Assembly (NCBI GenBank): GCA_002269645.1 | Contig: NIVC01000179.1 | Coordinates: 62,001 to 126,000, forward strand | Source: Macrostomum lignano | Taxonomy: Eukaryota | DNA length: 64,000 bases | Direction: 5' to 3' | Notes under the pieces: generated by a model | Databases searched by the model: none | What the model saw: only the letters and a program-made list of their open reading frames with translations | What the model was told of the DNA's origin: nothing | Shown here: positions 12,872 through 59,200 of the stretch, one piece after another | Numbering within the stretch: the first letter of the stretch is position 1 | Layout: each line of letters opens with the position of its first letter | Translations under genes and position numbers: made by a program

Positions 12872-12910
12872 CTCGAAGCTATGCAATGCAAGGAACCCCC
12901 AAGCGGTCAC

Positions 12911-25700: not shown

Positions 25701-28700
25701 AGCCAGTGCGAGTCGGGACATGATGCAGATGCATCTCACAGATGCCAAAATGTTTGGCTAAGGCAGAAGGTGCGCTTTTAGCTCTGACACTCGCCATGGA
25801 GATCTGCCTCTCCTCAGTATCATCAACTCTCTCTTTTCCACCCTTCGGCTCTTCTGTCCCCTCTCTGTCTCCGGTGTCTCCTCTCTGTCTCTGGTGTCCC
25901 CTCTCTGTCTCTGGTGTCCCCTCTCTGTCTCTGGTGTCCCCTCTCTGTCTCTGGTGTCCCCTCTCTGTCTCTGGTGTCCCCTCTCTGTCTCTGGTGTCCC
26001 CTCTCTGTCTGTGGTGTCCCCTCTCTGTCTCCGGTGTCCCCTCTCTGTCTCTGGTGTCCCCTCTCTGTCTCTGGTGTCCCCTCTCTGTCTCTGGTGTCCC
26101 CTCTCTGTCTCTGGTGTCCCTCTCTGTCTCTGGTGTCCCTCTCTGTCTCTGGTGTCCCCTCTCTGTCTCTGGTGTCCCCTCTCTGTCTCTGGTGTCCCTC
26201 TCTGTCTCTGGTGTCCCTCTCTGTCTCTGGTGTCCCCTCTCTGTCTCTGGTGTCCCTCTCTGTCTCTGGTGTCCCCTCTCTGTCTCTGGTGTCCCCTCTC
26301 TGTCTCTGGTGTCCCCTCTCTGTCTCTGGTGTCCCCTCTCTGTCTCTGGTGTCCCCTCTCTGTCTCTGGTGTCCCCTCTCTGTCTCTGGTGTCCCCTCTC
26401 TGTCTCTGGTGTCCCCTCTCTGTCTCTGGTCTCCCCTCTCTGTCTCTGGTGTCCCCTCTCTGTCTCCGGTGTCCCCTCTCTGTCTCCGGTGTCCCCTCTG
26501 CATCTCTCTTTTTCTCCTTGCTTCGCTCTGTCTCTTTCGGGATTCCTCTTCCTTCCTATCATCCCAATGCACTTTAATGTGAGTCATCAAGCTCCCAGTG
26601 GAAAGATAAGGCCCACTATGAGGTTGGGTTGAGTCACTCCTATCGCTGGATTATAATATCCCATTGATGCCAAACAATTGAATTAATTATCGTATAGACT
26701 CTTATCCATCATGGCAACAAAAATACGAGCTACCTGTTGCTGTGAACGCGGTCCCTGACTCACAGCCCGAGAACTGAGAACTTGAGAGCTCTTTTATGGG
26801 CAGAAACTCAAAGCTCAACCCATTTATAGCATTAGCATTCTTCCCCAGCGATATGGAAAGAGGTCTAGTAGCAACGGAAGTTCACCTTGGATACGCACTA
26901 ATAAAATAGAGTCAGCCTCAGATAAAAAAGAGGTTGGGGCAAGTCTGGCCTGAGTAAAGACCGGCTCCAAGCCATTGTTTGCTCACAGTTGCAAGAGAAG
27001 TCACTCACTGACCAAACAAGTTGAAGCCTTCTATTGTTTAAATCAGTGCATTTGCAGAGGCCTGTCAAATAGTCAAACAGCCACTCCATGCTTTGCCATG
27101 CCTAATTTATGAGCCAGACAGAGACATGGCAGGCAGGCTGGGCCTGTGACGTCCCGCTCAGACAATGCCCTTTTGTACAAGCGCTAGCCGAAGTTACACA
27201 ATCGCACGCATAGTCAGACACAACATGAAAGAGGAGCGTAGTGCAGTGCTTCTTAGGCTTGAAAAGTGCTCTTTAAGTAATGAGTAAATGAAGCAATAAA
27301 AAATTAATAAGAAATCATTTTTTTTACCTGATAGTCTTTTTTTAATAACTGGTCTTTTGGGTTCACCTGGTGCAAGAAACAGGGTATTAAATAGAAAAGT
27401 TAATGCTTAAGTTATGATTTGGCTCATGGCTGCGGGGCCAGATGAGAGAGGAAAGGGGAGGGAATTGAGGAGAAAGAGATGAGGAAAAAGGAGATGAGAG
27501 AGAAGATAAAAGGAGAGAAGAGGGGAGACAGTGGAGAATAGAAAAGACAGAATAGACGAGGGAGAAAAGAGAAGAGAGAGGAGAGAAGAGAGAAGAGAGA
27601 AGAGAGAAGAGAGAAGAGAGAAGAGAGACGAGAGACGAGAGCAGAGAGAAGAGAGAAGAGAGAAGAGAGAAGAGAGAAGAGAGAAGAGAGAAGAGAGAAG
27701 AGAGAAGAGAGAAGAGAGACGAGAGACGAGAGAAGAGCGAAGAGAAAAGAGAGAAGAGAGAAGAGAGAAGAGCGAAGAGAAAAGAGAGAAGAGAGAAGAG
27801 AGAAGAGAGAAGAGAGAAGAGAAAAGAGAAAAGAGAGAAGAGAGAAGAGAGAAGAGAGAAGAGAGAAGAGAGAAGAGAGAAGAGAGAAGAGAGAAGAGAG
27901 AAGAGAGACGAGAGACGAGAGCAGAGAGAAGAGAGAAGAGAGAAGAGAGAAGAGAGAAGAGAGAAGAGAGAAGAGAGAAGAGAGAAGAGAGAAGAGAGAA
28001 GAGAGAAGAGAGAAGAGAGACGAGAGACGAGAGAAGAGCGAAGAGAAAAGAGAGAAGAGAGAAGAGAGAAGAGCGAAGAGAAAAGAGAGAAGAGAGAAGA
28101 GAGAAGAGAGAAGAGAGAAGAGAAAAGAGAAAAGAGAGAAGAGAGAAGAGAGAAGAGAGAAGAGAGAAGAGAGAAGATAGAAGATAGAGAGAAGAGAGAA
28201 GAGAGAAGAGAGAAGAGGGAAAACCAGAGGCTTTAGCACCGAGGGCTTTAGCACCGAGGGCTTTAGCACCTGGGGTTCCAGCACCGGGGGCTTTAGCACC
28301 GGGGGCTTTAGCACCGAGGGCTTTAGCACCTGGGGCTTTAGCACCAGGGGCTCCAGCACCGGGGGCTTTAGCACCGGGGGTTCCAGCACCGGGGGCTTTA
28401 GCACAGGTGGTTTTAGCACCGAGGGCTTTAGCACCTGGGGCTTTAGCACCGGGGGTTCCAGCACCGGGGGCTTTAGCACCGGGGGCTCCAGCACCGGGGG
28501 CTCCAGCAAGAGCGGCAGTGTACAAAGCGCATTGCCTACACTTCTGCCTCCCTCACCGGGGTTCTTCAGCGGCAGCAGCAGCGGCTCCGGGCCCGGGCAG
28601 GCCAGGCGCCGGTGGCTGGGCGTCGGATGGCAAGGCCCGAAGTCGCGCGGCCAGAAGGGGCCCCGGGAGTCGCGCGCCACACCAAACTGGTCCCGATAGC

Positions 28701-31599
28701 GTCCGTCCGGCTGCAGGATCAGCGGCGACCCGTCCGGCAGGCGGCCGGTGCGGACGGCCTCCCGAAATCCGTCGCGGGTGAAGTTGGCGAACAAGCGCAG
28801 CTTCTCGTCCGGCGTCAGGTCGCCGAAATGGCGCATCGCCTCGGCGCCGAGGCGGAAGGCGGGCAGCGACAGCTGCGGCGGGCGCCGGGCCAGGGTAGTC
28901 AGGTGGCGAGCCTCACTTCCCGACTCCTCGCTGTCTTCGTCCTCGTCGAAGTCAGAGTTGTCGTCGGGGAAGTCGCCAAATCGGCGACGATGGCGATGCT
29001 GGCGCGGCTGCTGCGTTGGGGCTTCGGTTGCTGCCTGTTCAGCGGCGTCGGAGGTCGCCGCAGCGGGACGTTGGGACCTGTCGGTGGCTGCGGCGGTGGC
29101 TGCTGCTGCAGCAGCCGTAGCGGCCGCCAAAGCGTGGGCGGCCTTGCGGAACTGGGCCAACTGTTCCTCCTTTTGGGCGGCGGCGCGGAGCCTCGCCAGC
29201 TCCCGGTTGCGGCGTTGCCGTTCGCCAGGCGGCGTGTCCAGCGCCTCCCGCACCCGCCGGCTGATGTCCGCCTCCAGGTCGCGGCGGAGGCGCTCGCGCC
29301 ATTCCTCGTTGCCTGGTAGATTGCGGATTTGAGCGGCTTGGTTACTAGAGCGAGGGGTTGCTAGGGCGAGAGTTGCTAGGGCGAGAGTTGCTAGGGTGAC
29401 TGGTTGCTAGGGTGACATGTTATGAGGGCGACGTGTTGTTAGGGCTACGTGTTGCTAGGGTGACGTGTTGTTAGGGCTACGTGTTGCTAGGGTGACGTGT
29501 TGCTAGGGTGACGTGTTGCTAGGGCTACGTGTTGCTAGGGTGACGTGTTGCTAGGGTGACTTGTTGCTAGGGCTACGTGTTGCTAGGGTGACGTGTTGCT
29601 AGGGTGACGTGTTGTTAGGGTGAGGAGTTTTTGAGGCTACTTGAGGTTACTTGAGCTTAGTTAGTTTGCAGGGGGCTTTGGGTACTGCCGCAAATCAAGA
29701 CGTCAGTTATCACTTGGGCGAGGAGGCTGACCCCTGAGCACGCACACGCGGATACGTACGCAGCCACACACTCGCAGGACAGGGTACACTGCCTGCTGCC
29801 TGCCTTTGTCAGGCAGTGTACATACTCTATGCCTTGGGGGTTCGGCCTTCATGGGCAAAAGTACACAGGCATCAGGTCAGCTCCAAAGCTCCAAATTAAT
29901 GTGACGGAGGACGGAATAGAACCAGGGGTCGTCGTGTGAGTGTCAGACATGAGGTTACCGGAGCATTAGGTTACCGGAGCATGAGGTTACGGGAGCATGA
30001 GGTTACCGGAGCATGAGGTTACCGGAGCATGAGGTTACCGGAGCATGAGGTTACCGGAGCATGAGGTTACCGGAGCATGAGGTTACCGGAGCATGAGGTT
30101 ACCGGAGCATGAGGTTACCGGAGCATGAGGTTACCGGAGCATGAGGTTACCGGAGCATGAGGTTACCGGAGCATGAGGTTACCGGAGCATGAGGTTACCG
30201 GAGCATGAGGTTACCGGAGCATGAGGTTACCGGAGCATGAGGTTACCGGAGCATGAGGTTACCGGAGCATGAGGTTACCGGAGCATGAGGTTACCGGAGC
30301 ATGAGGTTACCGGAGCATGAGGTTACCGGAGCATGAGGTTACCGGAGCATGAGGTTACCGGAGCATGAGGTTACCGGAGCATGAGGTTACCGGAGCATGA
30401 GGTTACCGGAGCATGAGGTTACCGGAGCATGAGGTTACCGGAGCATGAGGTTACCGGAGCATGAGGTTACCGGAGCATGAGGTTACCGGAGCATGAGGTT
30501 ACCGGAGCATGAGGTTACCGGAGCATGAGGTTACCGGAGCATGAGGTTACCGGAGCATGAGGTTACCGGAGCATGAGGTTACCGGAGCATGAGGTTACCG
30601 GAGCATGAGGTTACCGGAGCATGAGGTTACCGGAGCATGAGGTTACCGGAGCATGAGGTTACCGGAGCATGAGGTTACCGGAGCATGAGGTTACCGGAGC
30701 ATGAGGTTACCGGAGCATGAGGTTACCGGAGCATGAGGTTACCGGAGCATGAGGTTACCGGAGCATGAGGTTACCGGAGCATGAGGTTACCGGAGCATGA
30801 GGTTACCGGAACATGAGGTTACTGGAGGAGGATGTACCGGGGAATCGGTTACCGGAGAATGGGGTTACCGGGGAATCGGTTACCGGAGAATGGGGTTACC
30901 GGGGAATCGGTTACCGGAGAATGGGGTTACCGGGGAATCGGTTACCGGAGAATGGGGTTACCGGGGAATCGGTTACCGGAGAATGGGGTTACCGGGGAAT
31001 CGGTTACCGGAGAATGGGGTTACCGGGGAATCGGTTACCGGAGAATGGGGTTACCGGGGAATCGGTTACCGGAGAATGGGGTTACCGAGGAATGGGGTTA
31101 CCGGGGAATGTGATTATCGGTGGCATAAGTTACCGGGAAATGGGTTACCGGAGAATGGGTTACCGGGGAATGAGGTTACCGGAGAATGGGGTTACCGGGG
31201 AATGTGATTATCGGTGGCATAGGTTACCGGGAAATGGGTTACCGGAGAATGGGGTTACCGGGGAATGTGATTATCGGTGGCATAGGTTACCGGGAAATGG
31301 GTTACCGGAGAATAGGGTTACCGGGGAATGGGGTTACCGCGGAATGGGTTACCGGGAAATGGGTTACTGGGGAATGGGTTACCGGGGAATGGGGTTACCG
31401 GTGGCATAGGTTTACCGGGGTGGCATGGGTTACCGGATCATAGGGCTACCCAGTGCAGGTACCCGAGCCCAGGCAGAGAAAATCACTCACTCTCAATATC
31501 CACCTGCTGCCGCTTGGCGTGTCGCAGAACTTCGCCCTCCTCCGACTGCAGTCTCGGCAGCAGACGTTCGGTACGCTGCTGCTGCTTCTGGTAGCTCAT
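12911..31599 (-). CDS. AGBL2: Cytosolic carboxypeptidase 2/3-like (M14 tubulin deglutamylase), spliced gene, ~1070-1120 aa
   Basis: Exons joined by hand, GT-AG and in phase: 31599-31491, 29312-28557, 24760-24568, 20358-20046, 19898-19715, 19584-19433, 19271-18790, 18300-18086, 17878-17659, 17473-17347. These are followed either by 16439-15837 (stop) or by 15487-15359, 14332-14264, 13171-12911. Motifs [71 protein letters not shown] and FTMEATF match AGBL2/AGBL3 from recall, and the Zn ligands and catalytic Glu are intact. AGBL2 versus AGBL3 cannot be resolved. The start codon is tentative. Confidence 0.93.
13305..13635. repeat. 20-bp minisatellite (CTATTGTCATTCTGGTCACT)n
   Basis: Direct reading. 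Confidence 0.95.
13684..13776. repeat. (CT)n microsatellite
   Basis: Direct reading. Confidence 0.95.
14264..14332 (-). CDS. AGBL2: CCP gene downstream exon ([23 protein letters not shown])
   Basis: Acceptor tttcag, donor ATG|gtgagt; 23 codons, phase 0 to 0. Confidence 0.65.
14570..15302. repeat. 21-bp minisatellite (GGCACCTCTGACACYCAAAGW)n
   Basis: Direct reading; lies in CCP intron 15358-14333. Confidence 0.95.
15359..15487 (-). CDS. AGBL2: CCP gene downstream exon ([24 protein letters not shown])
   Basis: Acceptor cccgcag, donor AGG|gtgaga; 43 codons, phase 0 to 0; non-low-complexity peptide. Confidence 0.75.
15837..16439 (-). CDS. AGBL2: CCP gene alternative terminal exon (or a 48-nt exon 16439-16392 if the internal AAG|gtagct donor is used)
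   Basis: Strong acceptor tttcctttgcag in phase 0; 201-codon GC-rich open frame to TGA. Confidence 0.7.
   Translation of the reverse strand, partial: DAAEAGGSRTGSNQKKVAANVKSHYAEYFSLAQEAGNWGGADAGDPSSTCSADDRLYKRISAMYWRQPLLRRSESRAQQRLECLQPMLFTGAQAGLCSDAAARVRLPALCGGFFRQQQPQQQDFGRGLVQLTIRGSGGESVAIPCRRGVRVLSERPQLQQPPPRLPDGRVPAISQDDRRLHVLNLMDFSSLSRSSPPPPV
17347..17473 (-). CDS. AGBL2: CCP gene exon ([10 protein letters not shown] acidic tract)
   Basis: Acceptor cctcag, donor GCG|gtgagc; comparable to the SGSDSS tract of AGBL2/3. Confidence 0.85.
17659..17878 (-). CDS. AGBL2: CCP gene exon (post-catalytic)
   Basis: Acceptor aaccag, donor GA|gtgagt; phase 1 to 2. Confidence 0.85.
18086..18300 (-). 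CDS. AGBL2: CCP gene exon ([12 protein letters not shown]…)
   Basis: Acceptor ttctag, donor G|gtgaga; HF-x-EDL motif follows the catalytic domain as in AGBL2. Confidence 0.9.
18472..18768 (-). mobile_element. tRNA-derived SINE, copy 1 (inside a CCP intron)
   Basis: Minus strand: A-box TAGTGGTTAGAG, B-box GGTTCGATTCTC, central TGTGTCCTTGAGCAAGACACTTAAC…CAGCTGTAAAATGGG, 3' hairpin and A-rich end; body nearly identical to copies 2 and 3. Confidence 0.85.
18790..19271 (-). CDS. AGBL2: CCP gene exon ([10 protein letters not shown]…DLHGHS…TMEATF)
   Basis: Acceptor ccccag, donor GA|gtgagt; catalytic core. Confidence 0.95.
19433..19584 (-). CDS. AGBL2: CCP gene exon ([12 protein letters not shown], Zn ligands)
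   Basis: Acceptor ccgcag, donor AAG|gtgggg. Confidence 0.95.
19715..19898 (-). CDS. AGBL2: CCP gene exon ([22 protein letters not shown]…LLTVTDP)
   Basis: Acceptor ctccag, donor G|gtgagc. Not reported in the ORF track on this strand; read directly from the sequence. Confidence 0.95.
20046..20358 (-). CDS. AGBL2: CCP gene exon ([12 protein letters not shown]…YYQLEWQM)
   Basis: Acceptor ccgcag, donor ATG|gtgagg; phase 2 to 0. Confidence 0.95.
21924..21961 (+). promoter_or_regulatory. Candidate Kv promoter elements: TGACTCA (AP-1), TGCATGCGC (NRF1-like), CTGATTGG (inverted CCAAT)
   Basis: Three motifs within 40 bp, ~200 bp upstream of the Kv ATG; motif match only. Confidence 0.3.
22163..23524 (+). 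CDS. Intronless voltage-gated K+ channel subunit, Shaw/Kv3-like, 453 aa, nested antisense in CCP intron 24567-20359
   Basis: T1/BTB domain ([26 protein letters not shown]…ESCC), six hydrophobic segments, S4-S5 linker [13 protein letters not shown] (as in Kv3 RHFVGLRVLGHTL), pore [15 protein letters not shown]. Confidence 0.93.
   Translation: MEQTQQLQPHQQQQRPNQETMMILNMRGERMYFPKSVLNNERYTGLRQMLDENKITEWPNNESYYDLDPTVFRLLLNYYRHGNMHLPTYLCGPLLEKELQSWNVRITPDRLESCCMHTAMDSKYWKVLLDDFEKNALADPEEDELPETKKSTLHRLWPLLNQPCSSIPAIIYATLMVLCSIASAVMYTKDPPHQCSDWGHRGALTANCTLPNGSLDEAARSDFAYVICQSAFTLLFTVDLMLRALLTPNRAVFVRSPHTWNDVVSLVPLYGFLLYRMTGSRLDLRSPVGWLFELLSVALFFRVFRIIRHFMGIRVLAYTLLNGLSDLLMVVLLVFTATFLFGTIFFLMERADKENQDKVPTMFHGYYWAVITITTVGYGDITPNTVEGRVLAILCSLVGLIVVAVTVPIVSESFQRYYGHTSHLSVRGEVGKFAFKAKKSVKRAKNWLYHSGF
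23973..24408. repeat. 14-bp minisatellite (GTTAGCAACATCCG)n
   Basis: Direct reading. Confidence 0.95.
24568..24760 (-). CDS. AGBL2: CCP gene exon (…[17 protein letters not shown])
   Basis: Acceptor cttacag, donor GT|gtgagt; conserved CCP N-domain motif. Confidence 0.95.
24795..25170. repeat. 32-bp G-rich minisatellite (GGGTGTGGGTGCTGGGGAAGGGTTGGCGTGCG)n
   Basis: Direct reading. Confidence 0.95.
25853..26500. repeat. 20-bp minisatellite (CTCTCTGTCTCTGGTGTCCC)n
   Basis: Direct reading. Confidence 0.95.
27565..28215. repeat. (GAGAA)n pentamer array
   Basis: Direct reading. Confidence 0.95.
28226..28508. repeat. 15-bp minisatellite (GGCTTTAGCACCGGG)n
   Basis: Direct reading. Confidence 0.93.
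28557..29312 (-). CDS. AGBL2: CCP gene exon 2 (Ala-rich/acidic N-terminal extension, ending RDSRGPFWP...PEPLLLP)
   Basis: Acceptor ctaccag, donor G|gtgagg; 756 nt, phase 1 to 1. Confidence 0.85.
29340..29622. repeat. 16-bp minisatellite (GTTGCTAGGGTGACGT)n; monomer matches the RFX X-box consensus
   Basis: Nine exact GTTGCTAGGGTGAC copies (29387, 29403, 29451, 29483, 29499, 29531, 29547, 29579, 29595). Confidence 0.93.
29949..30812. repeat. Homogeneous 16-bp minisatellite (ATGAGGTTACCGGAGC)n
   Basis: ~54 copies, essentially invariant. Confidence 0.97.
30813..31438. repeat. 15/16-bp minisatellite with GGTTACCGG core (GGGGAATCGGTTACCGGAGAATGGGGTTACC dimer)
   Basis: Direct reading; contiguous with and related to the preceding array. 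Confidence 0.92.
31491..31599 (-). CDS. AGBL2: CCP gene probable first coding exon ([14 protein letters not shown]...VDIE)
   Basis: In-frame ATG at 31599; donor A|gtgagt (phase 1) joins cag|GC at 29312. The frame stays open upstream to 31770, so the true start could be further 5'. Confidence 0.65.
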
Positions 31600-38040: not shown

Positions 38041-38145
38041 AACCATTCACCTCCTTGACTCTCCGAAGGGGGACCGCGCTGCGGACACAGGCATCACCGG
38101 ATCTCCCTGCGCGACACCGCAGCACCAGGTGTCCGTGGTCGCAAG

Positions 38146-39570
38146 CCCATACCATACCATAGACACAACCCCATACCATACCATAGACACAACCCCATAC
38201 CATACCATAGACACAACCCCATACCATACCATAGGCACAACCCCATACCCTACCATAGACACAACCCCATACCATACCATAGACACAACCCCATACCATA
38301 CCATAGACACAACCCCATACCCTACCATAGACACAACCCCATACCATACCATAGACACAACCCCATACCATACCATAGACACAACCCCATACCATACCAT
38401 AGACACAACCCCATACCATACCATAGACACAACCCCATACCATACCATAGACACAACCCCCATACTATACCATAGACACAACCCCATACCATACCATAGA
38501 CACAACCCCATACCATACCATAGACACAACCCCATACCATACCCTAGACACAACCCCATACCATACCCTAGACACAACCCCATACCATACCATAGACACA
38601 ACCCCCATACCATACCATAGACACAACCCCCATATCATACCATAGACACAATCCCATACCATAGACACAACCCCATACCATACCATATACACAACCCCAT
38701 ACCATACCATAGACACAAACCCATACCATACCATAGACACAACCCCATACCATACCATAGACACAACCCCATACCATACCATAGACACAAACCCATACCA
38801 TACCATAGACACAACCCCATACCATACCATAGACACAACCCCATACCATACCATAGACACAACCCCATACCATACCATAGACACAATCCCATACCATACC
38901 ATAGACACAACCCCATACCATACCATAGACACAAACCCATACCATACCATAGACACAACCCCATACCATACCATAGACACAACCCCATACCATACCATAG
39001 ACACAAACCCATACCATACCATAGACACAACCCCATACCATACCATAGACACAACCCCATACCATACCCTAGACACAACCCCATACCATACCCTAGACAC
39101 AACCCCATACCATACCATAGACACAACCCCCATACCATACCATAGACACAACCCCCATATCATACCATAGACACAATCCCATACCATAGACACAACCCCA
39201 TACCATACCATATACACAACCCCATACCATACCATAGACACAACCCCATACCATACCATAGACACAACCCCATACCATACCATAGACACAATCCCATACC
39301 ATACCATAGACACAATCCCATACCATACCATAGACACAACCCCATACCATACCATAGACACAACCCCATACCATACCATAGACACAACCCCATACCATAC
39401 CATAGACACAATCCCATACCATACCATAGACACAACCCTATACCATACCATAGACACAACCCCATACCATACCATAGACACAACCCCATACCATACCATA
39501 GACACAATCCCATACCATACCATAGACACAATCCCATACCATACCATAGACACAACCCCATACCATACCA
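38146..39570. repeat. 24-bp minisatellite (CATACCATACCATAGACACAACCC)n
   Basis: Direct reading. Confidence 0.95.
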
Positions 39571-40161
39571 TAGACGAAATTTGGGCTAAAAACATTTAGG
39601 AGAATTTATAATTCTCGGTTCGTGCTACCACAGCAAACGATTTTACACAGACACCAATAGGAGTATTGTAGCGAATTTGTCAGACAGACAGCTGTGCAAC
39701 CGTTAACAGCAACAGTTTGCATAGTTTTTGATTAAACGTATTTGGCTTCGGCTGCAGAAGAACAAAAAAATTATGATTTATTCTTGCACGCAAATTCGAA
39801 ACGTACCGTGCACAGGCTGCGGAAATGATTGACTGCGGTGCATGTATGCAGGACCGGACTAACCATGTATGGTTGGGTACGGAAATCAATAGGACCGTGA
39901 AGCCCACTGTGGAAAGGTCACTAAGGCAAGACAGACAGAATTTCTCCGAAGGGGGATTCCAGGCTGGCCAGATAACCGTTTAGGAGAAGTATTTCTGCAC
40001 AGAATGCCGCCATGGACAGCTAAAGTTGAAGGATACGGCATTCACAGATTGTGAAAATTTTATTTGGAAACATTCGCTGCAAAACTAGAATTTTATATCA
40101 CAGAAATGACGATGCTCACATGCTGAGCTGTCGAATGTGGAATAAGTCGTGTCTTTTGCCC

Positions 40162-41377: not shown

Positions 41378-44300
41378 TCAGCCTCTCAGCTGATCCACCA
41401 TGGCGACCCCCACGGCCGAAGTCCGCCTACCGCTGAGCAGCCAGTCCAGCTGCCTGGACAGCACGTTGAGCTCACGGCTCTGCGCCTCCAGGCTGTCCAG
41501 CATGCCGGCCTGGGCGACGCCGACCTTGTTGAGCCTGGCTGCCGCGGCCGCCGACTCCCCGGTTAGGCTGGCTTCGTCGCCGCCGACGCCGACGCCGCCA
41601 AACCCGTCGAGCCTCGGGCGCAGCCGCCTAAGCGTGACGGCCTGGTAAAACAGGTACACCATGTACACGGAGCTCCGCTCGCCGATCGCCGCCAGCTTGT
41701 CTGCCGAGGCCGCGTCAGCTGGCGACGCCGATCGGTCGGCGCCGGTGCAGGCGGAGCTCAGCTGGCGGACCAGCCAGCACAGCAGGTTCCACAGCTCCAG
41801 CAGCAGGTTGAAGGGCAGCGGGACGGCCGAACGGGCTGTGAATTCTTCGTTGAGCTCGTAGCAGCCGATCAGCCACATGGAGCGGGACTCCGCGTCCACT
41901 GAGTCCACCGTCTTGCTGAACAGCGCCACGATCACGTTCAGGAGCAGGATCTGTACGATGGCGATGTATAGTACTAGCAGGATGTAGTGCACCAGGTCGC
42001 TGCCGGGGTGCGCCACGCACATGCTAGCGCCATCCGGCGCGGAGGTGTCGTTGCCGTCGCTGGGGCTGTAGTCGCACACGTTTTCGAGTTCGTCCAGGCC
42101 GTATTCGCCTGCGAGGGGAGTTATAATCCAACCCAATATAATCCAACCCAATATAATCCAACCCAATCCAATCCAACCCAATATAATCCAATCCAATATA
42201 ATCCAATCCAATATAATCCAATCCAATCCAATCCAACCCAATATAATCCAACCCAATATAATCCAACCCAATATAATCCAACCCAATCCAATCCAACCCA
42301 ATATAATCCAATCCAATATAATCCAATCCAATATAATCCAATCCAATCCAATCCAACCCAATATAATCCAATCCAATATAATCCAATCCAATATAATCCA
42401 ACCCAATATAATCCAATCCAATATAATCCAATCCAATATAATCCAATCCAATCCAATCCAACCCAATATAATCCAATCCAATATAATCCAATCCAATATA
42501 ATCCAACCCAATATAATCCAATCCAATATAATCCAATCCAATATAATCCAACCCAATATAATCCAACCCAATATAATCCAACCCAATCCAATCCAACCCA
42601 ATATAATCCAATCCAATATAATCCAATCCAATATAATCCAATCCAATCCAATCCAACCCAATATAATCCAATCCAATATAATCCAATCCAATATAATCCA
42701 ACCCAATATAATCCAATCCAATATAATCCAATCCAATATAATCCAATCCAATCCAATCCAACCCAATATAATCCAATCCAATATAATCCAACCCAATATA
42801 ATCCAATCCAATATAATCCAATCCAATATAATCCAATCCAATCCAATCCAACCCAATATAATCCAATCCAATATAATCCAATCCAATCCAATCCAATCCA
42901 ATCTAATCCAACCCAATATAATCCAATCCAATCCAATCCAATCCAATCCAACCCAATCCAATCCAATCTAATCCAATCCAATCCAACCCAATCCAATCCA
43001 ACCCAATCCAATCCAATCTAATCCAACCCAATATAATCCAATCCAACCCAATATAATCCAATCCAATCCAATCCAACCCAATCCAATCCAATCTAATCCA
43101 ATCCAATCCAATCCAATCCAATCCAACCCAATCCAATCCAACCCAATCCAATCCAATCCAATCCAACCCAATATAATCCAATCCAATCCAATCCAATCCA
43201 ATCCAACCCAATCCAATCCAATCTAATCCAATCCAATCCAACCCAATATAATCCAATCCAATCCAATCCAATCCAATCCAACCCAATCCAATCCAATCTA
43301 ATCCAATCCAATCCAACCCAATATAATCCAATCCAATCCAATCCAACCCAATATAATCCAACCCAATATAATCCAATCCAATCCAATCCAACCCAATATA
43401 ATCCAATCCAATCCAATCCAACCCAATATAATCCAACCCAATATAATCCAATCCAATCCAATCCAACCCAATATAATCCAATCCAATCCAATCCAATCCA
43501 ATCCAATATAATCCAATCCAATCCTATCCAATCCAATCCAATCCAATCCAATCCAATCCAATCCAATATAATCCAATCCAATCCTATCCAATCCAATCCA
43601 ATCCAATCCAACCCAATCCAATCCAATGCAATCCAACCCAATATAATCCAATCCAATCCAATCCAATCCAATCCAACCCAATCCAATCCAATCTAATCCA
43701 ATCCAATCCAACCCAATCCAATCCAACCCAATCCAATCCAATCTAATCCAACCCAATATAATCCAATCCAACCCAATATAATCCAATCCAATCCAATCCA
43801 ACCCAATCCAATCCAATCTAATCCAATCCAATCCAATCCAATCCAATCCAACCCAATCCAATCCAACCCAATCCAATCCAATCCAATCCAACCCAATATA
43901 ATCCAATCTAATCCAATCCAATCCAATCCAACCCAATCCAATCCAATCTAATCCAATCCAATCCAACCCAATATAATCCAATCCAATCCAATCCAATCCA
44001 ATCCAACCCAATCCAATCCAATCTAATCCAATCCAATCCAACCCAATATAATCCAATCCAATCCAATCCAACCCAATATAATCCAACCCAATATAATCCA
44101 ATCCAATCCAATCCAACCCAATATAATCCAATCCAATCCAATCCAACCCAATATAATCCAACCCAATATAATCCAATCCAATCCAATCCAACCCAATATA
44201 ATCCAATCCAATCCAATCCAATCCAATATAATCCAATCCAATCTTATCCAATCCAATCCAATCCAATCCAATCCAATCCAATCCAATATAATCCAATCCA

Positions 44301-47300
44301 ATCCTATCCAATCCAATCCAATCCAATCCAACCCAATCCAATCCAATGCAATCCAACCCAATATAATCCAATCCAATCCAATCCAATCCAACCCAATCCA
44401 ATCCAATCTAATCCAATCCAATCCAACCCAATCCAATCCAACCCAATCCAATCCAATCTAATCCAACCCAATATAATCCAATCCAACCCAATATAATCCA
44501 ATCCAATCCAATCCAACCCAATCCAATCCAATCTAATCCAATCCAATCCAATCCAATCCAATCCTATCCAATCCAACCCAATCCAATCCAATCCAATCCA
44601 ACCCAATATAATCCAATCCAATCCAATCCAATCCAATCCAACCCAATCCAATCCAATCTAATCCAATCCAATCCAACCCAATATAATCCAATCCAATCCA
44701 ATCCAATCCAATCCAACCCAACCCAATCCAATCTAATCCAATCCAATCCAACCCAATATAATCCAATCCAATCCAATCCAACCCAATATAATCCAACCCA
44801 ATATAATCCAATCCAATCCAATCCAACCCAATATAATCCAATCCAATCCAATCCAACCCAATATAATCCAACCCAATATAATCCAATCCAATCCAATCCA
44901 ACCCAATATAATCCAATCCAATCCAATCCAATCCAATATAATCCAATCCAATCCTATCCAATCCAATCCAATCCAATCCAATCCAATACAATCCAATATA
45001 ATCCAATCCAATCCTATCCAATCCAACCCAATCCAATCCAATCCTATCCAATCCAATCCAATACAATCCAATATAATCCAATCCAATCCAATCCAATCCA
45101 ATCCAATCCAATCCAATCCAATCCAATCCAATCCAATATAATCCAATCCAATCCTATCCAATCCAATCCAACCCAATCCAATCCAATCCAATATAATCCA
45201 ATCCAATCCTATCCAATCCAATCCAACCCAATATAATCCAACCCAATATAATCCAATCCAATATAATCCAATCCAATCCTATCCAATCCAATCCAATCCA
45301 ATCCAATCCAATCCAATATAATCCAATCCAATCCTATCCAATCCAATCCAAACCAATCCAATCCAACCCAATATAATCCAATCCAATCCAATCCAATCCA
45401 ACCCAATATAATCCAACCCAATATAATCCAATCCAATCCAATCCAATCCAATCCAATCCAATCCAATCCAATCCAATCCAATCCAATTTAACCCAAAAGC
45501 CCCTGTTGCCTAGCCTCCAGTGTGTCCGCAGTTACTTACCCACAATGGCATAAAATGTCCTCCTGATGATGGCCACCGCCAGCTCGGCAGGCGGGATGTT
45601 CACACTTCTGCCGTTCCGGTGGTAGGCGGCGCCCGGCCAGAGCAGAGCGGCGAAGGCGATCCCGAAGCCGGCCATGACCACAGCCAAGATGTATAGGAAC
45701 GGGATGAAGTCGCGCCGGATGACCTGGGACAGCATTTTGAGCTTGACGCCGACAGACTCCAGCACGACCGAGACGAACAGGATGCGCAGCCAGAAGATGA
45801 GGGTGGCCGCTACCACGAAGATGTATCCGACGCTGCGGGAGCGGCGCTCGTGGTCCGGCATCAGGGTGCCAAGCAAGTCCCAATCGCTCGAGCTGAAGCG
45901 GCGAGAGACGAAAGCGATCAAGCCGCAGGTGACAGCCACCAAGTCCAAGATGTTCCAGCCATCGGAGAGGTAGGCGGCGAGCACGCCCCGGTGATAACAT
46001 GCGACCAGCTCGCGAAGCTCCTCGGCCAGAACGCCCAGCATGGCCAAGTAGCTCGCCACCTCCAGGCTGCTGACGTCACCCTGCGTGGTACCGAAAACCT
46101 TTTATCTATTCAGCCCTCCTTATCTTTGCTTTAGCAGGAAATAAACGTGGAAAGAATGACACCCGATGCAACTCTTTTCGGCACCTTCTGGCCGATGAGA
46201 GCAGTCAGCTCAGCCGCATGCCAAACAATCTGCCATCACGCCAATAAGTAAAACAGTCTCACCTGAAAGTCGTGCAAAATCATCAGCGACAGCATGGTCA
46301 CGGTTGCAAAGTAGAACGCTACGCTGGCGCGGAACTTCACGCACGGAGTGTCGTAGAAGCGGTGCAGGTCGGCGGCGCAGGCCCGAAGCTCTGAGCACCA
46401 GCCGGGTGGAGGCGGCGGCGGCGGCCGATTGGACGAGTTATTCTCGACAGACTCTTCCTCATCGGCGTTAGCGAGCTCATCCTCTTCAACACCGTCGTCG
46501 TTGCCCTCGCCATCCGAGTCGCCCAGCATTTTGTCCAGGAAGCGCCTCTTCTCCGGATCATTCAGCCGACGCAGCAGGCGCGGCAGGAAGGGCAGCAGCG
46601 GCGGTAGGAAGCCGCAGGCGATGAGCAGCTCGCGAACAAACGACGACTGGCCGGGCAGGGAGCGACTTTTAAAGAACTCGCCATACCAGCGCATGTCCGT
46701 GGCCAGCTCGGCGATGTCCAGCTTGACGAGGCTGGTGACGCAGCCGATGGCGGCCAAGTCAAGCACCGTGTAGTCGGCGTAGTTGGGCAGTGGCTGGCTG
46801 ATGAAGCTGATGGTCAGGCAGTTGCCCACAGAGCTGTCGACGTCTTTCACCGCGCGCAGCGTCCGCACCGCCAAGGACTCGCAGATGCCGGCGACGCGGG
46901 CTGCGGCCTCGGCGAACACGTTGTCCACCTCCGGCCGGCGAGCCAGGGCGCGGAGCAGCGTGGCAGAGAGCAGCGCCAGCGGCACCATGTCGAACTCCTC
47001 CTGGCGTAGCAGCACCGTCACCAGCCGCAGGCGACCCGTCAGCACCGCCCAGGTGGTCAGCGACTGCAGCGGATCGCGCAGCGCCCCGACGGCGTCGATC
47101 TCACGAGGGAACACCGGCTCGCGGGAGCGGAACCGCTCGAAGCCGGTCAGCCGGGCCACCACCCGGTTCAGCCGGCCGGCCTCCACGCGCCAGCGGCCGT
47201 CAGGGGAGCCGGCGGCCAGCTCCCGGCGAATCGCCTGACACGGCCCACCGACAACAGAAGCCGAGGCAGCCGCAGCGGCGGACGACCCAGAGACCGTCGC

Positions 47301-48533
47301 CTTGCGGTAGCGGAGGGCCACCGAGTACAGCTGGCGGATGCGCAGTCGGAGCCGGGCGGCCAGCAGCAGCCAGAGACGCCTGCAGGCGGTCAGCCGCCTC
47401 AGCTGGCCAGCTTCCTGCGTCAAAAGGACGAGTCGGCCGACACGACCGGCCAGTCGGCCAACCAGGCCGGCCGAGTCCGCCAGCTCTAGATCGGGCGTCA
47501 GGCCCAGCTGATGCGCGTCGACCAAGGCGTCGACCAGCCGCTGGCTCGACATTCCCCGCTCGCTGGCGACCGCCTCCAGACCGGCGAGCCGCTCCTTACA
47601 GACCCGGTCGCTCGGCCGGAACGGCGTCTCCCCGTCAAAGGCGGTGCCTGTGTCGATGCTCAGCAGCTGGGCCAGGTAGGCGCGGCCGGGTCGGCTGGAG
47701 AGCAGGTCGCTGGCGGTCTGGCCCCGTCGCAGGCCCGGCCGCAGGGGGGCAGCCAGGCGCCGGCCAAGGCAGTCCAGGCCATCGGTGTCGCGGCCAACCA
47801 GCAGGATGTCAACCGGCGCCCGGCCTCGCCCGTCCAGAGCCAGGTGGTCGGCGCCGCAACGCAGCAGCAGCTGCAGCAGCTCAGCGTTGCCGGCGGCCGC
47901 GGCCACGTGCAGGCAAGTGATTTTCCCGAGGCCGAGCCCGATGGTGGGGCAGCAAGCCAGCCGCGGTTCCGCCGCCAGCAGAGCTGCCGCGGCAGAATTG
48001 TTGCCGGCCAGGCAGGCGCGATGCAGCGGGTTGTCGCCATCGGCGTCAGTCGCCCAGCTGTCGGCACCGGCGGCGAGCAGGGCGAGCAGGCAGGGTGCGT
48101 CGCCGCTGTGGCAGCTCTCGGCTGCCGTGTGCAGCGGCGTCTCGCCGACATTTTCGCCATTATATTCGAAGCTTTCGTTATCACCGCTGCTGCCGCGATC
48201 TTCATCAGCGTCGGTGAGGTCTGGGTCGGCGCCGCTGGCTAGTAAAAGGCGCAGACAGGCCGGCCGGCACTCAGGCGACACGGCCGCGTGCAGCAGGCGG
48301 CGCCGGCAACGGCGCCCGATGAGGTCGGCGTCCTCGCAAGCTGCACAGGGCGCGTTGGGATCGCCGCCGCTACGCAAAAGCTTTTCAAGGGCGTCGGCAT
48401 CGTCCAGCTGGACGGCCGCGTGCATGCGGGATGCGAGATCGGCCTGCTGCATGATAATGCGATACGGCTGGGTCTGCACTGCCTTCTGCTGCTTCAAATA
48501 GCTGGCAGAGAAGACGGAGCGCCGACATGACAT
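41378..48533 (-). CDS. TRP cation channel with N-terminal ankyrin repeats and TRPM-type body, ~1180 aa, 3 exons
   Basis: Exons 48533-46263 (donor CAG|gtgaga), 46080-45540 (acgcag| … G|gtaagt) and 42108-41378 (tcgcag|, stop) are in phase and total 3543 nt. There are ~5 ankyrin repeats (GETPLHTAA, GDNPLHRAC, TCLHVAA). Also present: TRPM MHR4-like DPLQSLTTWAVLTGR…TVLDLAA…MRWYG, pre-S1 FYDTPCVKF, S2/S3 DGWNILDL, pore FYAIVGEYGLDEL, S6 ILLLNVIVALFS, and a TRP helix MWLIGCYEL…AVPLPFN. Confidence 0.9.
42124..45486. repeat. (ATCCA)n pentamer satellite with ACCCA/ATATA variants, ~3.36 kb, filling TRP intron 2
   Basis: Direct reading; ~720-725-bp higher-order duplications (identical ORFs at 42968 and 43693). 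Confidence 0.97.
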
Positions 48534-48621
48534 GCACTGCTACAATTCTTTTGCGCGGGCCAATCACAGCACTTCCAGCAAAGGCAGCCTGCACTGTTAA
48601 ATTTTTACTTGCCACACTGGC

Positions 48622-49890
48622 TTTGTCTCCCCATCGAGCTCCGCTGTCTGCCCACCGAGCTCCCCTTCTCCTTGTCGAGCTCCGCTGACTCCCCATCGAG
48701 CTCCCCTTCTTCTTGTCGAGCTCCGCTGTCTCCTCACCGATTTCCCCTTCTCCCCATCGAGCTCCGCTGACTCCCCATCGAGCTCCCCTTCTTCTTGTCG
48801 AGCTCCGCTGTCTCCTCACCGATTTCCCCTTCTCCCAATCGAGCTCCGCCGTCTGCCCATCGAGCTCCGCTGTCTCCCCATCGAGCTCCGCTGTCTCCCC
48901 ATCGAGCTCCGCTGTCTCCCCATCGAGCTCCACCCTTCCCCCGATAAGAGCTCCGCTGTCTCCCCACCGAGCTTCGCAGTCTCCTCATCGAGCTCCGCTG
49001 TCTCCTCCCCGATTTCCCCTTCTCCCCATCGAGCTCCGCTGACTCCCCATCGAGCTCCCCTTCTTCTTGTCGAGCTCCGCTGTCTCCTCACCGATTTCCC
49101 CTTCTCCCAATCGAGCTCCACCGTCTGCCCATCGAGCTCCGCTTTCTCCCCATCGAGCTCCGCTGTCTCCCCATCGAGCTCCGCTGTCTCCCCATCGAGC
49201 TCCGCTGTCTGCCCATCGAGCTCCGCTGTCTCCCCATCGAGCTCCGCTTTCTCCCCATCGAGCTCCGCTGTCTCCCCATCGAGCTCCGCTGTCTCCCCAT
49301 CGAGCTCCAGCCTTCCCCCGATAAGAGCTCCGCTGTCTCCCCACCGAGCTTCGCAGTCTCCTCATCGAGCTCCGCTGTCTCCTCACCGATTTCCCCTTCT
49401 CCCAATCGAGCTCCGCCGTCTGCCCATCGAGCTCCGCTGTCTCCCCATCGAGCTCCGCTGTCTCCCCATCGAGCTCCACCCTTCCCCCGATAAGAGCTCC
49501 GCTGTCTCCCCACCGAGCTTCGCAGTCTCCTCATCGAGCTCCGCTGTCTCCTCCCCGATCTCCCCTTCCCCGATAAGAGCTCCGCTGTCTCCCCATCGAG
49601 CTCCGCTGTCTCCCCATCGAGCTCCGCTGTCTGCCCATCGAGCTCCGCTGTCTCCCCATCGAGCTCCGCTTTCTCCCATCGAGCTCCGCTGTCTCCCCAT
49701 CGAGCTCCGCTGTCTCCTCCCCGATCTCCCCTTCCCCGATAAGAGCTCCGCTGTCTCCCCATCGAGCTCCGCTGTCTCCCCATCGAGCTCCGCTGTCTCC
49801 CCATCGAGCTCCGCTGTCTCCCCACCGAGCTTCGCAGTCTCCTCATCGAGCTCCGCTGTCTCGTCATCCAGCTTCATTGTCTCCCCATCA
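48622..49890. repeat. 21-bp-based minisatellite (CCCCATCGAGCTCCGCTGTCT)n with longer variant units
   Basis: Direct reading. Confidence 0.93.
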
Positions 49891-54735: not shown

Positions 54736-55794
54736 TAGTATTATTACCTAAGCCGGCAAAATGACAGATTTTCCAAGGATTCTTCCAGGAAGGATATTTC
54801 CAGGCCACCATCGCTGTCTCAGTGCCTGCGCACTTTTCCCGACCCCCAGTCTAAATGAGCTGTGGGAAATTCGGTCGAAGTTAGTGCCAGAATTGGGAAG
54901 CCAAGTTGGGAAGAGCGGACGGGCAGTTCAAGGGCGCATTGGAGGAGGCACGCAGAGCCGAGAGGACGAGGGGAGAGCTGCTGAACAGTGTCACATGACG
55001 CCGTGGAATTGAAGGACTGGCGGGGGGGCTGGCGCGGGTCCCACTTCGCTGCGGGGTTACGTAATCCCCCCCCCCATTCAGCCAGAGGCCCTAGAAGAGA
55101 GAGAAGAGAGTTAGGGAGAAGATCTGGGCAAGGAAGGCCTGGCATTGTGTGGGAGGCAGCCCGTCTGCTTAGCTGGCTCGGGGGGACGGGCATAGAGTGA
55201 CACCTGCAGTGCCTGGCGGGCGGCGAGGACACAGTTTTGGGGAAGCCTTCGGGTATGCGGGCCATGGGCTAAAGGACTGGGAGGCTGGGAGATGAAGATC
55301 AAAATAAGAGAGACGACAGGAGAAAGCAGCCAGTGGCGGGAGCGCAGCGGCCGCAGCCTTGAACTCCGGTTGACCCGACAGCCTCATTCCGCCTCCACGC
55401 CCAACCCCCCATCTCTCTTCCCCATCGTGGAGTTCGATTTTGGAATTTGCCCGTTTCGATCGGCGCGAGGATTTTTGGGGGAAGAAAATACGAGGGGAAG
55501 AAATGAAAGCGCCAATTGCGATGGCTGATGAGTCATCGCCAGCAGCCCGCCACATCCCCCATGAATATAGTGAAGCCCGTGCTCCCCCTAGTTCAAGCAA
55601 ATCCCAAAGCAGGAGCAGCCCTCCCGGAAAAATCCCATTCGGGACTTTGGATTGGGAGAAATCCACGGAAATATTTGGGATGCGAACTTCCTATAGAGGC
55701 CTCGCACTAGCTGGCTGAGGGGGCATCGAAGAAGGAGCGACAAAGACCAAGTTTTGGAACTCTCGCTGCAGATATGGGAAGAAGGAAGGTGAGA

Positions 55795-56220
55795 TGAAGG
55801 GAAGTGAGGTGAGATAAATGGAAGTGAGGTGAAGGGAGGTGAGATGAATGAGGTGAGATGAAGGGAGCTGAGATGAAGGGAGCTGAGATGAAGGGAGCTG
55901 AGATGAAGGGAGCTGAGATGAAGGGAGCTGAGATGAAGGGAGCTGAGATGAAGGGAGCTGAGATGAAGGGAGCTGAGATGAAGGGAGCTGAGATGAAGGG
56001 AGCTGAGATGAAGGGAGCTGAGATGAAGGGAGCTGAGATGAAGGGAGCTGAGATGAAGGGAGCTGAGATGAAGGGAGCTGAGATGAAGGGAGCTGAGATG
56101 AAGGGAGCTGAGATGAAGGGAGCTGAGATGAAGGGAGCTGAGATGAAGGGAGCTGAGATGAAGGGAGCTGAGATGAAGGGAGCTGAGATGAAGGAAGCTG
56201 AGATGAAGGGAATTGGGATG
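55795..56220. repeat. 15-bp minisatellite (GAGATGAAGGGAGCT)n
   Basis: Direct reading. Confidence 0.95.
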
Positions 56221-59200
56221 ATGAGTAGTGAAAGCCCGAGGACAAGAGATGGAAAAAAATTAAAAACGCTATCACACATGATAAATATACTTTGTATGTG
56301 CAAAATTTTCTGTTAACACGTTTTTTCTCTTCCGCGTAACTGGGGCATCACCAACCATGCTTCCTTCCTATCCCGATTTCTAGCTCGAGTTGTCCTTGAC
56401 TTAGAGATCTTATTTGAAACAAAGCCTGTAGGCGCCCGCCCAACCCTCCGCAGCGTTCCTTCCGCCTGAACAAACACGTGACTCTTGTGTCCCAGTTCGG
56501 GGCTAGCTAAAATTCTAACAGAATTTTCTTCCTATAAATGGGAAAACAGGGGGCGGTATACAAACAGAAATTGGGAGAGTCTTTGTCCGAACTGCTGACT
56601 AATTGCGCTCCACGTCTTGCGAAGGTCCGAATCCGCACAAAGCTTTGGAGTCCCGACAGCTTGGGCTCTGTCTGGGCAGTTGGCCTTAACGTTTCTCGAA
56701 TGGCCTAACTTATATGTATGTAAACTGACTTCTAATACAGCATACTCTGGGATATTTATTCCCTTCGATAAGAGATCTCGCTAGTAATTAAGGAATATTG
56801 AGGAAGACATGAAAAAAGAAGAGACCGTCAATATTCGGGCGGAGTAAAAGGAAGGTAAAAAATCTGAAGTTAGCCATTAACCTGCGCATGCAGCAATTGC
56901 GCTCGCTGCAGCACAGGTGCAGGCAGTGGGGCAGGCCGGTGTAGCAACAATGCTTCCTCGAACAGAAACCATAGGCAGTCGTAGGGGGGGGGCGCAAACT
57001 GGGCTGGCGGAGTCTGAAAATCGGGTCCCGCCTTGACCAGCCTCCCCACCGCGGAGGCTGCAAATTGCTTCTAATGGAAAGCCAGTCGTGGAGGGGGGAA
57101 CTGGCAAGTTCCAACCTTCCAAGTTCCAACCTCCACCAATCCTGTAGTCTCTGCAGCTTTACTTTTCTGTAGGAAAGTAAAGGAATGAAATTACAGAAAT
57201 GAAGCTCGCATTTTATATAGTTGAAGAAATCTGGCTGCTTTCGTAAAGAAATTTTCAGCTGACGCAACGTCGGGGCCCAATTATTGGAACTTTGCATCCT
57301 CCTTGTGCCCCCGGGTTTTTTGTGATGAAGCCAACATTTTGCCATTTTATTGCTTCTCTTGCTCACATATAACTCGGCCCACACGAACGGTGGTAAAGGC
57401 GGTGGGATTGAAAGTCTTGTAAAGTCTTGTCACCACACCTTACCACTCTTTGTTACATGCACTCGCCCCCTTTTTGCCTCAAATTTTCTGTTGCGCCCAA
57501 TGCAGGACCAGAGCCGATGAGTCACGATCTGTTCTTTCTAACCATTTTTTCCATGCCACTACAAGTCTGCAAGCCACCTCGGAGTCGGGGCGCTTTCACA
57601 AATCACAAGATCTAAATTTTCAAGTCGCCGAAACTTTAGACGACCCAGCCAGCTGTCGCACTCGTTGGAACTGAAGTTCACATCGCCTAAATGCCTAAAA
57701 ACGTTAACATCATGAAATCGCATGTACAAACCACTGAGACAAACCCTGAGACAAATTGTGCAGAAGTAAGGACTGATATCTAATAATTTAAGCAATTAGG
57801 CTATTTGAAGTTTTGGCGATGTGAAATGAAGGTTTTATGAAATTCCCAACCTGTCGAGTCTCAGCTCATCTCCCATGCGGACGTACCAGGAAGCCCTGAG
57901 AAAAGTCATGGTGATTACAGTGATAGGAATTCTGAAAGAAACTGATTCATACATAGCAGATCAATCAGCCATCCATCAAATGATCTTACGATCTTCGTAG
58001 GACAAAGGAAGTCGCTTAGTATGGTTGATTGACATGATGAAAACTGAACTGTAACATCCGTCGTCTGCCAAAATCCTAGAGGGACACGGGTGGGCCGAAC
58101 TGATATTGCTTATACGATTACGAATGACTAAAATGAAGGCTGCGTCACGTTCTAAAAATAGCATCACACGACATCTCCATTAGTAATTCATATATGCTTT
58201 ACTATGCTATACTTTGTTCGGCATGACTGCCCTACCGATAAGGCGGAAAACTCTCAGTCCTGCTGGGGGTTGGTTCGATTCGAATTAATCAGAATTTTCT
58301 CTGCCTTATTTATGGCTTTTCGATGCAGAACGCACTGGTGGAGCCGCCAAGAATGAATCTCTCAGGAGAAGGAAGAGCGCATTTATAAATATGTTTCGCG
58401 TTAAGGGTAAAGGAGCTGATATACATAAGTGCAGCCATTCAAATCGCCTGAACTTCCACATTTAGCACTTTTCGCAGTCCAATTCAAAGACTTGCTGCTT
58501 TGCTGTCTGTCTATCTGCTTTGCTGTCTGTCTATCTGTCGCATGCGCGAAATATAATTATTAGTGTAGCAATTGTGCATTAGCTGGTCCGCATGGCATGC
58601 GTTGCCTCGGTGCCTGTTCCTGCCTTAATAACAGAGCCGCAGACACGGAAATGCGAGCTACACTGCCGCTATCGCTGCGCACAGGCACATGCACTACACA
58701 CACATACACACACTGATACACAGGCTGCACCGCTCTACCGAAAGATAACCAAGCACTGAGTGCATGGCGGCTCGATGCGTTCGGTTTAGCTGAGCTCGCC
58801 GAATCGCTCAACTGACCGAAGGATCGAGTTGAATCGAGAGAGAGAGAAAGAGAGATCAGAGTGCGCGGGTGGGGACTGTGGAATTAAATTTATGTCAGGG
58901 AATGACTATTTTTTTCAATGCGAATTTCGCAATTTCAGTATACTACGGCACCGCAGCTACATGACTGGCATGCATGAGTTCAGTTGCTTGTTATCTCAAA
59001 ATTGTTGAGCTTTGCGTAAGCATACTCACAGTGCGTTGTAGAGGAAAACAAACCAAATTTACCAAGCACATCTGGAGCGATTTTTGCTGACTAGAACTTT
59101 TTGTATGTACTAGCACGATTAGGACATGCTGGTGTCTCCTGACTCCTAATATCCATGCGATTCAGAATGAGTCAGCTGAGCTCAGTCACAGGTTTCTCAC

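Follow-up and report, generated by a model that had tools for sequence, protein, structure and literature searches.

The schistosome channel Sm.TRPM_MCLZ (Smp_333650, formerly Smp_035140 and named 'TRPM7-like') is the target of meclonazepam. It lacks the NH2-terminal TRPM homology regions (MHR) 1/2 or SLOG and has ankyrin-repeat modules instead; its gene comprises three exons encoding 1380 residues, and the short C-terminus of the protein carries no enzyme domain (PMC11731825). The cloned channel yields (S)-meclonazepam-evoked currents in HEK293 cells (PMC10788528). Its clade adjoins the TRPMs, and the name "TRPM-like" has been suggested owing to the N-terminal ankyrin repeats (PMC12861061). 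Orthologues are found in trematodes, monogeneans and cestodes; the channel itself was described between 2023 and 2026 (PMC10788528, PMC11731825, PMC12861061), and in trematode TRPM_MCLZ exon 3 holds the entire channel domain. Here we analyzed a 64-kb stretch of the genome of the free-living flatworm Macrostomum lignano (assembly GCA_002269645.1, contig NIVC01000179.1, positions 62,001–126,000; hereafter the window, numbered from its first letter) and describe a channel gene on its minus strand, at 41378–48533. Our reading, with a probability of about 0.88, is that this locus encodes a divergent paralogue within the flatworm family of TRPM_MCLZ ('TRPM-like') channels.

A three-exon gene encodes an ankyrin-bearing TRPM-type channel

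Translation of join(complement(41378..42108,45540..46080,46263..48533)) gives an in-frame coding sequence of 3543 nt and 1180 codons on the minus strand, closed by a TGA stop codon at 41378–41380. Exon 1 (46263..48533) is open from codon 1 to codon 757 and contains the start ATG, the ankyrin domain, the MHR3/4-like region, an acidic/proline loop, the pre-S1 helix and S1; 5′ of its ATG (48533), an in-frame stop lies two codons away (open reading frame (ORF) fragment 46239–48539). Exon 2 (45540..46080, 541 nt) covers residues 758 to ~938 and, according to its open frame and the helices predicted by AlphaFold2 (AF2), supplies S2, S3, S4, the S4–S5 linker, S5 and the pore helix. Exon 3 (41378..42108, 731 nt) encodes residues 938–1180 and the stop, comprising the VGEY filter, S6, the TRP helix, the C-terminal helices and the coiled coil. 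Both introns are of the GT..AG type, with the donor sequences GTGAGA and GTAAGT. Intron 1 (46081..46262) is 182 nt long and has a GC content of 47%, against 63–69% in the exons, while intron 2 (42109..45539, 3431 nt) consists almost entirely of a pentanucleotide array.

Searching the ORF fragments of the window with a profile of the relatives yielded exactly three matches, all of them exons of the channel gene, and these abut in profile coordinates: 17–719 (5e-170), 716–897 (7e-71) and 897–1098 (1e-59). Because the coordinates of the three pieces are contiguous, the gene model is complete and colinear, with no exon missing. The junction between exons 2 and 3 falls within the most conserved pore motif and rebuilds it exactly (FYAIVG/EYGLD). 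The locus is thus a real three-exon gene of M. lignano. An earlier note on this DNA, made from the sequence alone, had assigned S1–S6, the TRP helix and a coiled coil to the two later exons; this holds from S2 onward, but S1 (residues 730–755) is part of exon 1. Its central observation, that a single 757-codon exon carries ~5 ankyrin repeats together with a TRPM MHR region, is borne out by the open frame, Pfam, AF2 and hhalign. The note had also argued that mis-splicing does not explain the fusion, and we agree: both parts lie in one ORF, and the design is common to >10 paralogues and orthologues. An artefactual gene fusion was likewise ruled out by the single ORF, the colinear paralogues and the cloned schistosome cDNA.

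Two repeat arrays lie within or beside the gene. The 3.36-kb array of intron 2 (42122–45487) reads (GGATT)n along the gene and (AATCC)n on the opposite, plus strand, with 88% matches, and shows a strong GC skew and long spurious ORFs in several frames. At 48624–49889, a 21-bp minisatellite of ~60 copies, with a higher-order unit of ~377 bp, starts 91 bp upstream of the channel start codon, so the space for the promoter and 5′ untranslated region is very short or lies within repeats.

The ankyrin repeat domain (47784..48446, minus strand; residues 30–250) comprises ~5 repeats and a C-terminal cap, as judged from Pfam, the PDB, AF2 and the alignment of paralogues. Pfam detected Ank (E 9e-17) and Ank_2 (E 3e-15), along with Ank_3, Ank_4 and Ank_5, and among PDB sequences this part matched DARPin and NOMPC ankyrin repeats. 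AF2 placed the ankyrin helix pairs at residues 33–54, 80–99, 133–154, 169–188 and 207–225. Alignment to the paralogues revealed two insertions found only in this gene, at approximately residues 70–80 and 112–130.

The ankyrin domain is followed by an all-helical MHR3/MHR4-like region (46599..47783, minus strand; residues 251–645), for which AF2 predicted an all-helical stretch at 274–670. When the region between the ankyrin domain and S1 was compared by hhalign with a canonical TRPM N-terminal profile, the match reached a probability of 99.8 (E 1.5e-29) and covered the profile from the end of SLOG through MHR3/4 up to pre-S1. With phmmer, TRPM4 546–1095 aligned with channel residues 475–1053, and the non-ankyrin part matched TRPMs only among PDB sequences. 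Residues 239–712, the ankyrin-free cytosolic part, were also modelled alone, and the top 50 Foldseek hits of this model were all TRPM. The Pfam TRPM2-like domain (PF25508, MHR3/4) is weak in the channel protein (E 0.005, 17.4 bits against a 27-bit cut-off) and exceeds the cut-off in seven of the eight paralogues tested. A variable stretch (46401..46598, minus strand; residues 646–711), which differs in length and sequence among paralogues, ends in a disordered acidic/proline-rich loop before pre-S1; AF2 gave a predicted local distance difference test score (pLDDT) below 50 at residues 669–703.

The Pfam scan of the channel protein found no SLOG (no LSDAT_euk match), NUDIX or kinase domain, and a local SLOG profile had no match, whether in the protein or among the ORF fragments of both strands across the whole window. 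An upstream SLOG exon was therefore rejected, as neither the ~15 kb upstream of the gene nor the remainder of the window yielded one. The domain content is as the note had expected, ankyrin plus TRPM-type domains and no SLOG, with the TRPM2-like match below cut-off. There is also no kinase or NUDT9H tail, as it had stated: Pfam found neither, and the stop follows residue 1180.

In the membrane part, the pre-S1 helix and S1 (46263..46400, minus strand; residues 712–757) correspond to AF2 helices 712–728 and 730–755. In exon 3, S6 lies at 41921–42004 and the TRP helix at 41834–41908 (both minus strand). The short C-terminus consists of helices at 1038–1096 and a 44-residue helix at 1121–1164 (41429–41560, minus strand) that would suit a coiled coil. 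The FYAIVGEY pore motif is intact, as are S6 and the acidic residues of S2 and S3. The full AF2 model, built from a 63-sequence alignment, has a pLDDT of 80.6 and a predicted template modelling score of 0.79, and contains five ankyrin helix pairs with their cap, the helical region, the loop, pre-S1, S1–S6, the pore helix, the TRP helix and the terminal helix.

Ankyrin repeats are typical of TRPA, TRPC, TRPN and TRPV channels, and NOMPC appears among the PDB matches of the full-length protein, albeit via the ankyrin region only. We therefore weighed whether the channel part belongs to one of these families, its TRPM likeness being due to chance. Pfam recognized Ion_trans (E 1e-14), and the membrane domain alone retrieved TRPM channels as its best 57 distinct PDB sequences (E 1e-21 to 1e-11), with TRPM2-type at the top; the first non-TRPM match, TRPV3, followed at 3e-9 over 59 residues only. 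The top 50 Foldseek hits of the full model were all TRPM as well, and in the paralogues the TRP box is of the TRPM type, WQFER[YFH], with PPPF/L after it. Together with the hhalign probability of 99.8 for MHR3/4, the membrane-domain search and both Foldseek runs refute a TRPA/C/N/V identity, which we consider exceedingly improbable; as the note had proposed, the membrane domain is TRPM-type and not TRPC/TRPA.

Compared with canonical TRPMs (TRPM2, TRPM4, TRPM8 and TRPM3), whose Pfam architecture is LSDAT_euk, TRPM2-like and Ion_trans, the channel shares the MHR3/4 fold, the membrane domain (PDB E 1e-21) and the C-terminal coiled coil, as well as the FY..G-E pore motif, S2 E..E/Q, S3 N..D and the tryptophan of the TRP helix. 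Unlike them, it has canonical N-terminal ankyrin repeats and lacks SLOG/MHR1-2, NUDT9H and kinase domains, and its TRP box is degenerate (WLIGCY, against WKFQR). The TRPS family (ced-11-like), a Group 1 TRP family and the sister of TRPM, shows the reverse domain content, with SLOG and Nudix and no ankyrin repeats (PMC7306681).

The channel belongs to the flatworm TRPM_MCLZ family

Three word-index protein searches retrieved no relatives, the first being swamped by generic ankyrin proteins and the other two empty, and an exhaustive HMMER search was needed. Run with the ankyrin-free part of the channel protein, it found 688 relatives. The closest (E 3e-180 to ~4e-41) were M. lignano paralogues and proteins of Opisthorchis, Dicrocoelium and Schistocephalus, so the architecture does occur in other flatworms, where the note had suggested looking for it. 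The M. lignano paralogues form ~10 lineages that are mutually <50% identical: the pair PAA53095/PAA86244, which is 44–48% identical to the window channel, A0A1I8J777, PAA64338, PAA66045, PAA90938, PAA51132, PAA79435, PAA64798 and PAA57148. Every full-length family member has ankyrin repeats, TRPM2-like and Ion_trans without SLOG, whereas the SLOG-bearing matches are nearly all more distant and without ankyrin repeats.

The ankyrin-bearing proteins form one clade in unrooted neighbor-joining distance trees, which were built without named TRPS, TRPC or TRPA references. Bootstrap support for this clade was 97% with the membrane domain (125 sequences, 317 columns) and 100% with MHR3/4 plus the membrane domain (62 sequences, 610 columns). 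Within it, the M. lignano copies group at 100% and the parasite sequences at 78%; in the membrane-domain tree, every node above the family has ≤12% support. In a 16-sequence family alignment (A1), the channel protein agrees at all 15 invariant columns.

The family was equated with TRPM_MCLZ through its published pocket and pore residues, which are, in Sm.TRPM_MCLZ numbering, L826, H827, H831, Y864, E868, I892, D893, R943, H946, Y1038, Y1117, R1120 and T1121 (PMC12861061). The Dicrocoelium protein shows all 13, each shifted by the same number of positions, and its Tyr at 946 is the residue reported for Plagiorchiida. Six substitutions have been reported for cestodes (L826F, I892L, D893E, H946F, R1120K and T1121S), and P0044 (Schistocephalus) and the cestode-type P0051 together account for all of them; I892L was seen in P0051 only and not in P0044. 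Two Opisthorchis viverrini gene models, P0038 and P0202 (1906 and 2059 residues), each contain two tandem MHR4-plus-channel modules. This agrees with the duplicated alternative exon 3a/3b reported for TRPM_MCLZ of Opisthorchiida, and these models probably fuse mutually exclusive exons. The residue signature, the cestode variants and the exon 3a/3b match identify the family as TRPM_MCLZ.

Like Sm.TRPM_MCLZ and its orthologues, the window protein has N-terminal ankyrin repeats in place of MHR1/2-SLOG. It also shares TRPM-type MHR3/4, S1–S6 and the TRP helix, a short enzyme-free C-terminus, three coding exons, residues E868, D893 and R943 and the pore tyrosine, in addition to its place in a clade with 97–100% bootstrap support. 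It differs in being a paralogue from a Macrostomum-specific expansion rather than a one-to-one orthologue, and in its shorter length (1180 against 1380 residues).

The earlier note had gone further and proposed a new, domain-shuffled TRP subfamily in which an ankyrin array was swapped in for the SLOG/MHR1-2 sensor. The architecture is indeed as described there, reviews of TRP channels and TRPM/TRPS phylogeny papers call TRPM and TRPS free of canonical ankyrin repeats (PMC7306681), and a 2026 metazoan TRPM survey left flatworms unsampled, all of which would favor novelty. However, the same architecture has been published for Sm.TRPM_MCLZ and its trematode, monogenean and cestode orthologues (PMC10788528, PMC11731825, PMC12861061), with which the window protein clusters, and a simple swap is argued against by two flatworm TRPMs that carry both ankyrin repeats and SLOG (see below). 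The claim of novelty thus falls on one of the refuting conditions that the note itself had set, and an unknown subfamily created by such a swap is very improbable. The architecture is already described and functionally characterized in parasitic flatworms, and the gene does not encode a new kind of channel. The TRPM_MCLZ papers that we searched cover parasites only and do not mention free-living flatworms; that the family occurs and has expanded in free-living Macrostomum may therefore be a minor new finding.

Divergent features of the M. lignano gene

Several observations count against our reading of the locus. At the 13 published positions, the channel protein has, in order, A, S, Y, V, E, L, D, R, F, Y, F, R and S. 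Both S1 histidines (H827 and H831) are lost, as is the S2 tyrosine of the meclonazepam pocket: at H827, H831, Y864, E868, R943 and Y1117 it has S, Y, V, E, R and F, keeping only E868 and R943 of the six. Among 63 parasite orthologues, H831 is completely and H827 well conserved (PMC12861061), and most M. lignano paralogues retain the S1 histidine pair. The TRP-box arginine is lost in this family member alone, a cysteine standing in its place (WLIGCY, against WQFER[YFH] or WLA[ED]RY in the others). Exon boundaries are also unlike those of trematodes, the channel domain being spread over all three exons (exon 1 contributes S1, exon 2 the part from S2 to the pore helix, and exon 3 everything from the filter onward) instead of confined to exon 3. 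The coding sequence has a GC content of 67%, rising to 84% at third codon positions (GC3), with introns at 37–47%, and the protein contains 34% Gly+Ala+Arg+Pro compared with 20–25% in the paralogues, which suggests strong GC-biased substitution at the locus. An exact look-up found neither the 1180-residue product nor a read-through ORF of 765 residues in the protein collections, and the best match in the exhaustive search of these collections was only 48% identical. The gene is therefore apparently unannotated. Finally, the link to Smp_333650 itself runs through published residue identities and numbering rather than its own sequence. The lost pocket residues speak against orthology and against sensitivity to the drug, but leave membership in the family unaffected.

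An alternative is that a TRPM_MCLZ-like gene survives here only as an incipient pseudogene, unexpressed or recently decaying, with a sequence shaped by GC-biased substitution rather than by function. Such decay would fit a product missing from annotated and predicted proteins, a GC3 and a Gly/Ala/Arg/Pro-rich composition unlike those of the paralogues, the unique loss of the TRP-box arginine together with that of the S1 histidine pair, and the satellite arrays that fill intron 2 and adjoin the 5′ end. Set against this, the 1180 codons run through three exons with canonical splice sites and without a stop or frameshift, although stop codons arise less readily at high GC, which makes an open frame by itself less telling than usual. 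None of the 15 invariant family columns has changed, the FYAIVGEY motif, S6 and the S2/S3 acidic residues have been preserved, and the AF2 model is confident. We consider decay unlikely, though not negligible, and favor a divergent paralogue of the TRPM_MCLZ family.

The selectivity filter of this paralogue also departs from that of the parasites. It reads VGEY here and VGEY or VGDY in the M. lignano paralogues, against IFES in trematode and cestode TRPM_MCLZ, so that ion selectivity may differ between free-living and parasitic members.

Origin of the SLOG-free architecture

In two flatworm TRPMs, M. lignano PAA85706 (P0050) and Clonorchis sinensis KAG5447154 (P0105), ankyrin repeats precede a SLOG domain. 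They share with the window channel their flatworm origin, the N-terminal ankyrin repeats, TRPM2-like and Ion_trans, but keep SLOG, which precedes the latter two domains, and are much longer (~1700–1800 residues). Their clade has 92% support and is the top-scoring SLOG-bearing group in the search. In the tree of MHR3/4 plus the membrane domain, a bipartition uniting them with the TRPM_MCLZ family appeared in 62% of bootstraps, and it is possible that they represent an intermediate architecture and the sister group of this family. The ankyrin domains are uninformative about a common origin, as a profile of the family's ankyrin repeats scores generic ankyrin proteins above P0050 and P0105.

The earlier note had spoken of a replaced sensor module. 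The ankyrin domain does occupy the place of SLOG, but a swap is not settled: since ankyrin–SLOG TRPMs exist and group nearby, loss of SLOG from an ankyrin-capped TRPM is at least as likely. With moderate support, the trees hint that the family arose through such a loss rather than through a swap. A fuller scenario, in which a TRPM_MCLZ-type channel predates Neodermata, arose by deletion of SLOG from an ankyrin-bearing TRPM and expanded to ~10 deeply diverged lineages in M. lignano, the GC-rich gene described here among them, is tentative, and we put it at somewhat less than even odds.

Predicted channel organization and gating

In the proposed channel, each subunit has an ankyrin domain where canonical TRPMs have their SLOG/MHR1-2 nucleotide-binding domain, followed by a retained MHR3/4 helical scaffold and a TRPM-type, voltage-sensor-like S1–S4. 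Next comes the pore (S5, pore helix, VGEY filter and S6); the TRP helix and a short tail, with the coiled coil at its end, complete the subunit. By homology to the cloned Sm.TRPM_MCLZ, the assembled protein is predicted to be a tetrameric, non-selective cation channel, presumably gated through the S1–S4/TRP cavity. The acidic and polar residues of the S2 EExxE and S3 WNxxD motifs are retained. We take these to be the TRPM Ca2+ site known from TRPM2/4/5/8 structures, and their retention makes Ca2+-dependent gating plausible by analogy. Given the loss of the S1 histidines, the S2 tyrosine and the TRP-box arginine, we predict that the channel is not sensitive to meclonazepam and that its natural stimulus differs.

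Other features of the window

The window contains a second channel gene at 22163–23524 on the plus strand, an intronless, GenBank-annotated voltage-gated K+ channel gene of 453 residues with BTB_2 and Ion_trans domains. It is apparently nested in an M14 carboxypeptidase gene of 1151 residues on the opposite strand (~18786–19268, minus strand). On the minus strand at 27424–29253, a 609-residue ORF starts with ~240 non-repetitive residues that have no Pfam match and continues as repeat-derived sequence with a sub-threshold extensin-like match; it may be part of a gene. Minisatellite arrays at 250–2635, 11490–13100, 14352–15536, 25699–26632, 27407–28525, 38047–39595 and 55691–56316 give rise to long ORFs in several frames on both strands, which are repeat artefacts rather than genes.

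Implications

This particular gene is of modest value: it fills a gap in the annotation and supplies one more natural variant, a divergent one, of the pocket, the filter and the TRP box. TRPM_MCLZ has been validated as an anthelmintic target. A free-living flatworm that is amenable to transgenesis and has many paralogues could help to study the role of an ankyrin domain in the place of SLOG, the gating of these channels and the evolution of the drug pocket.

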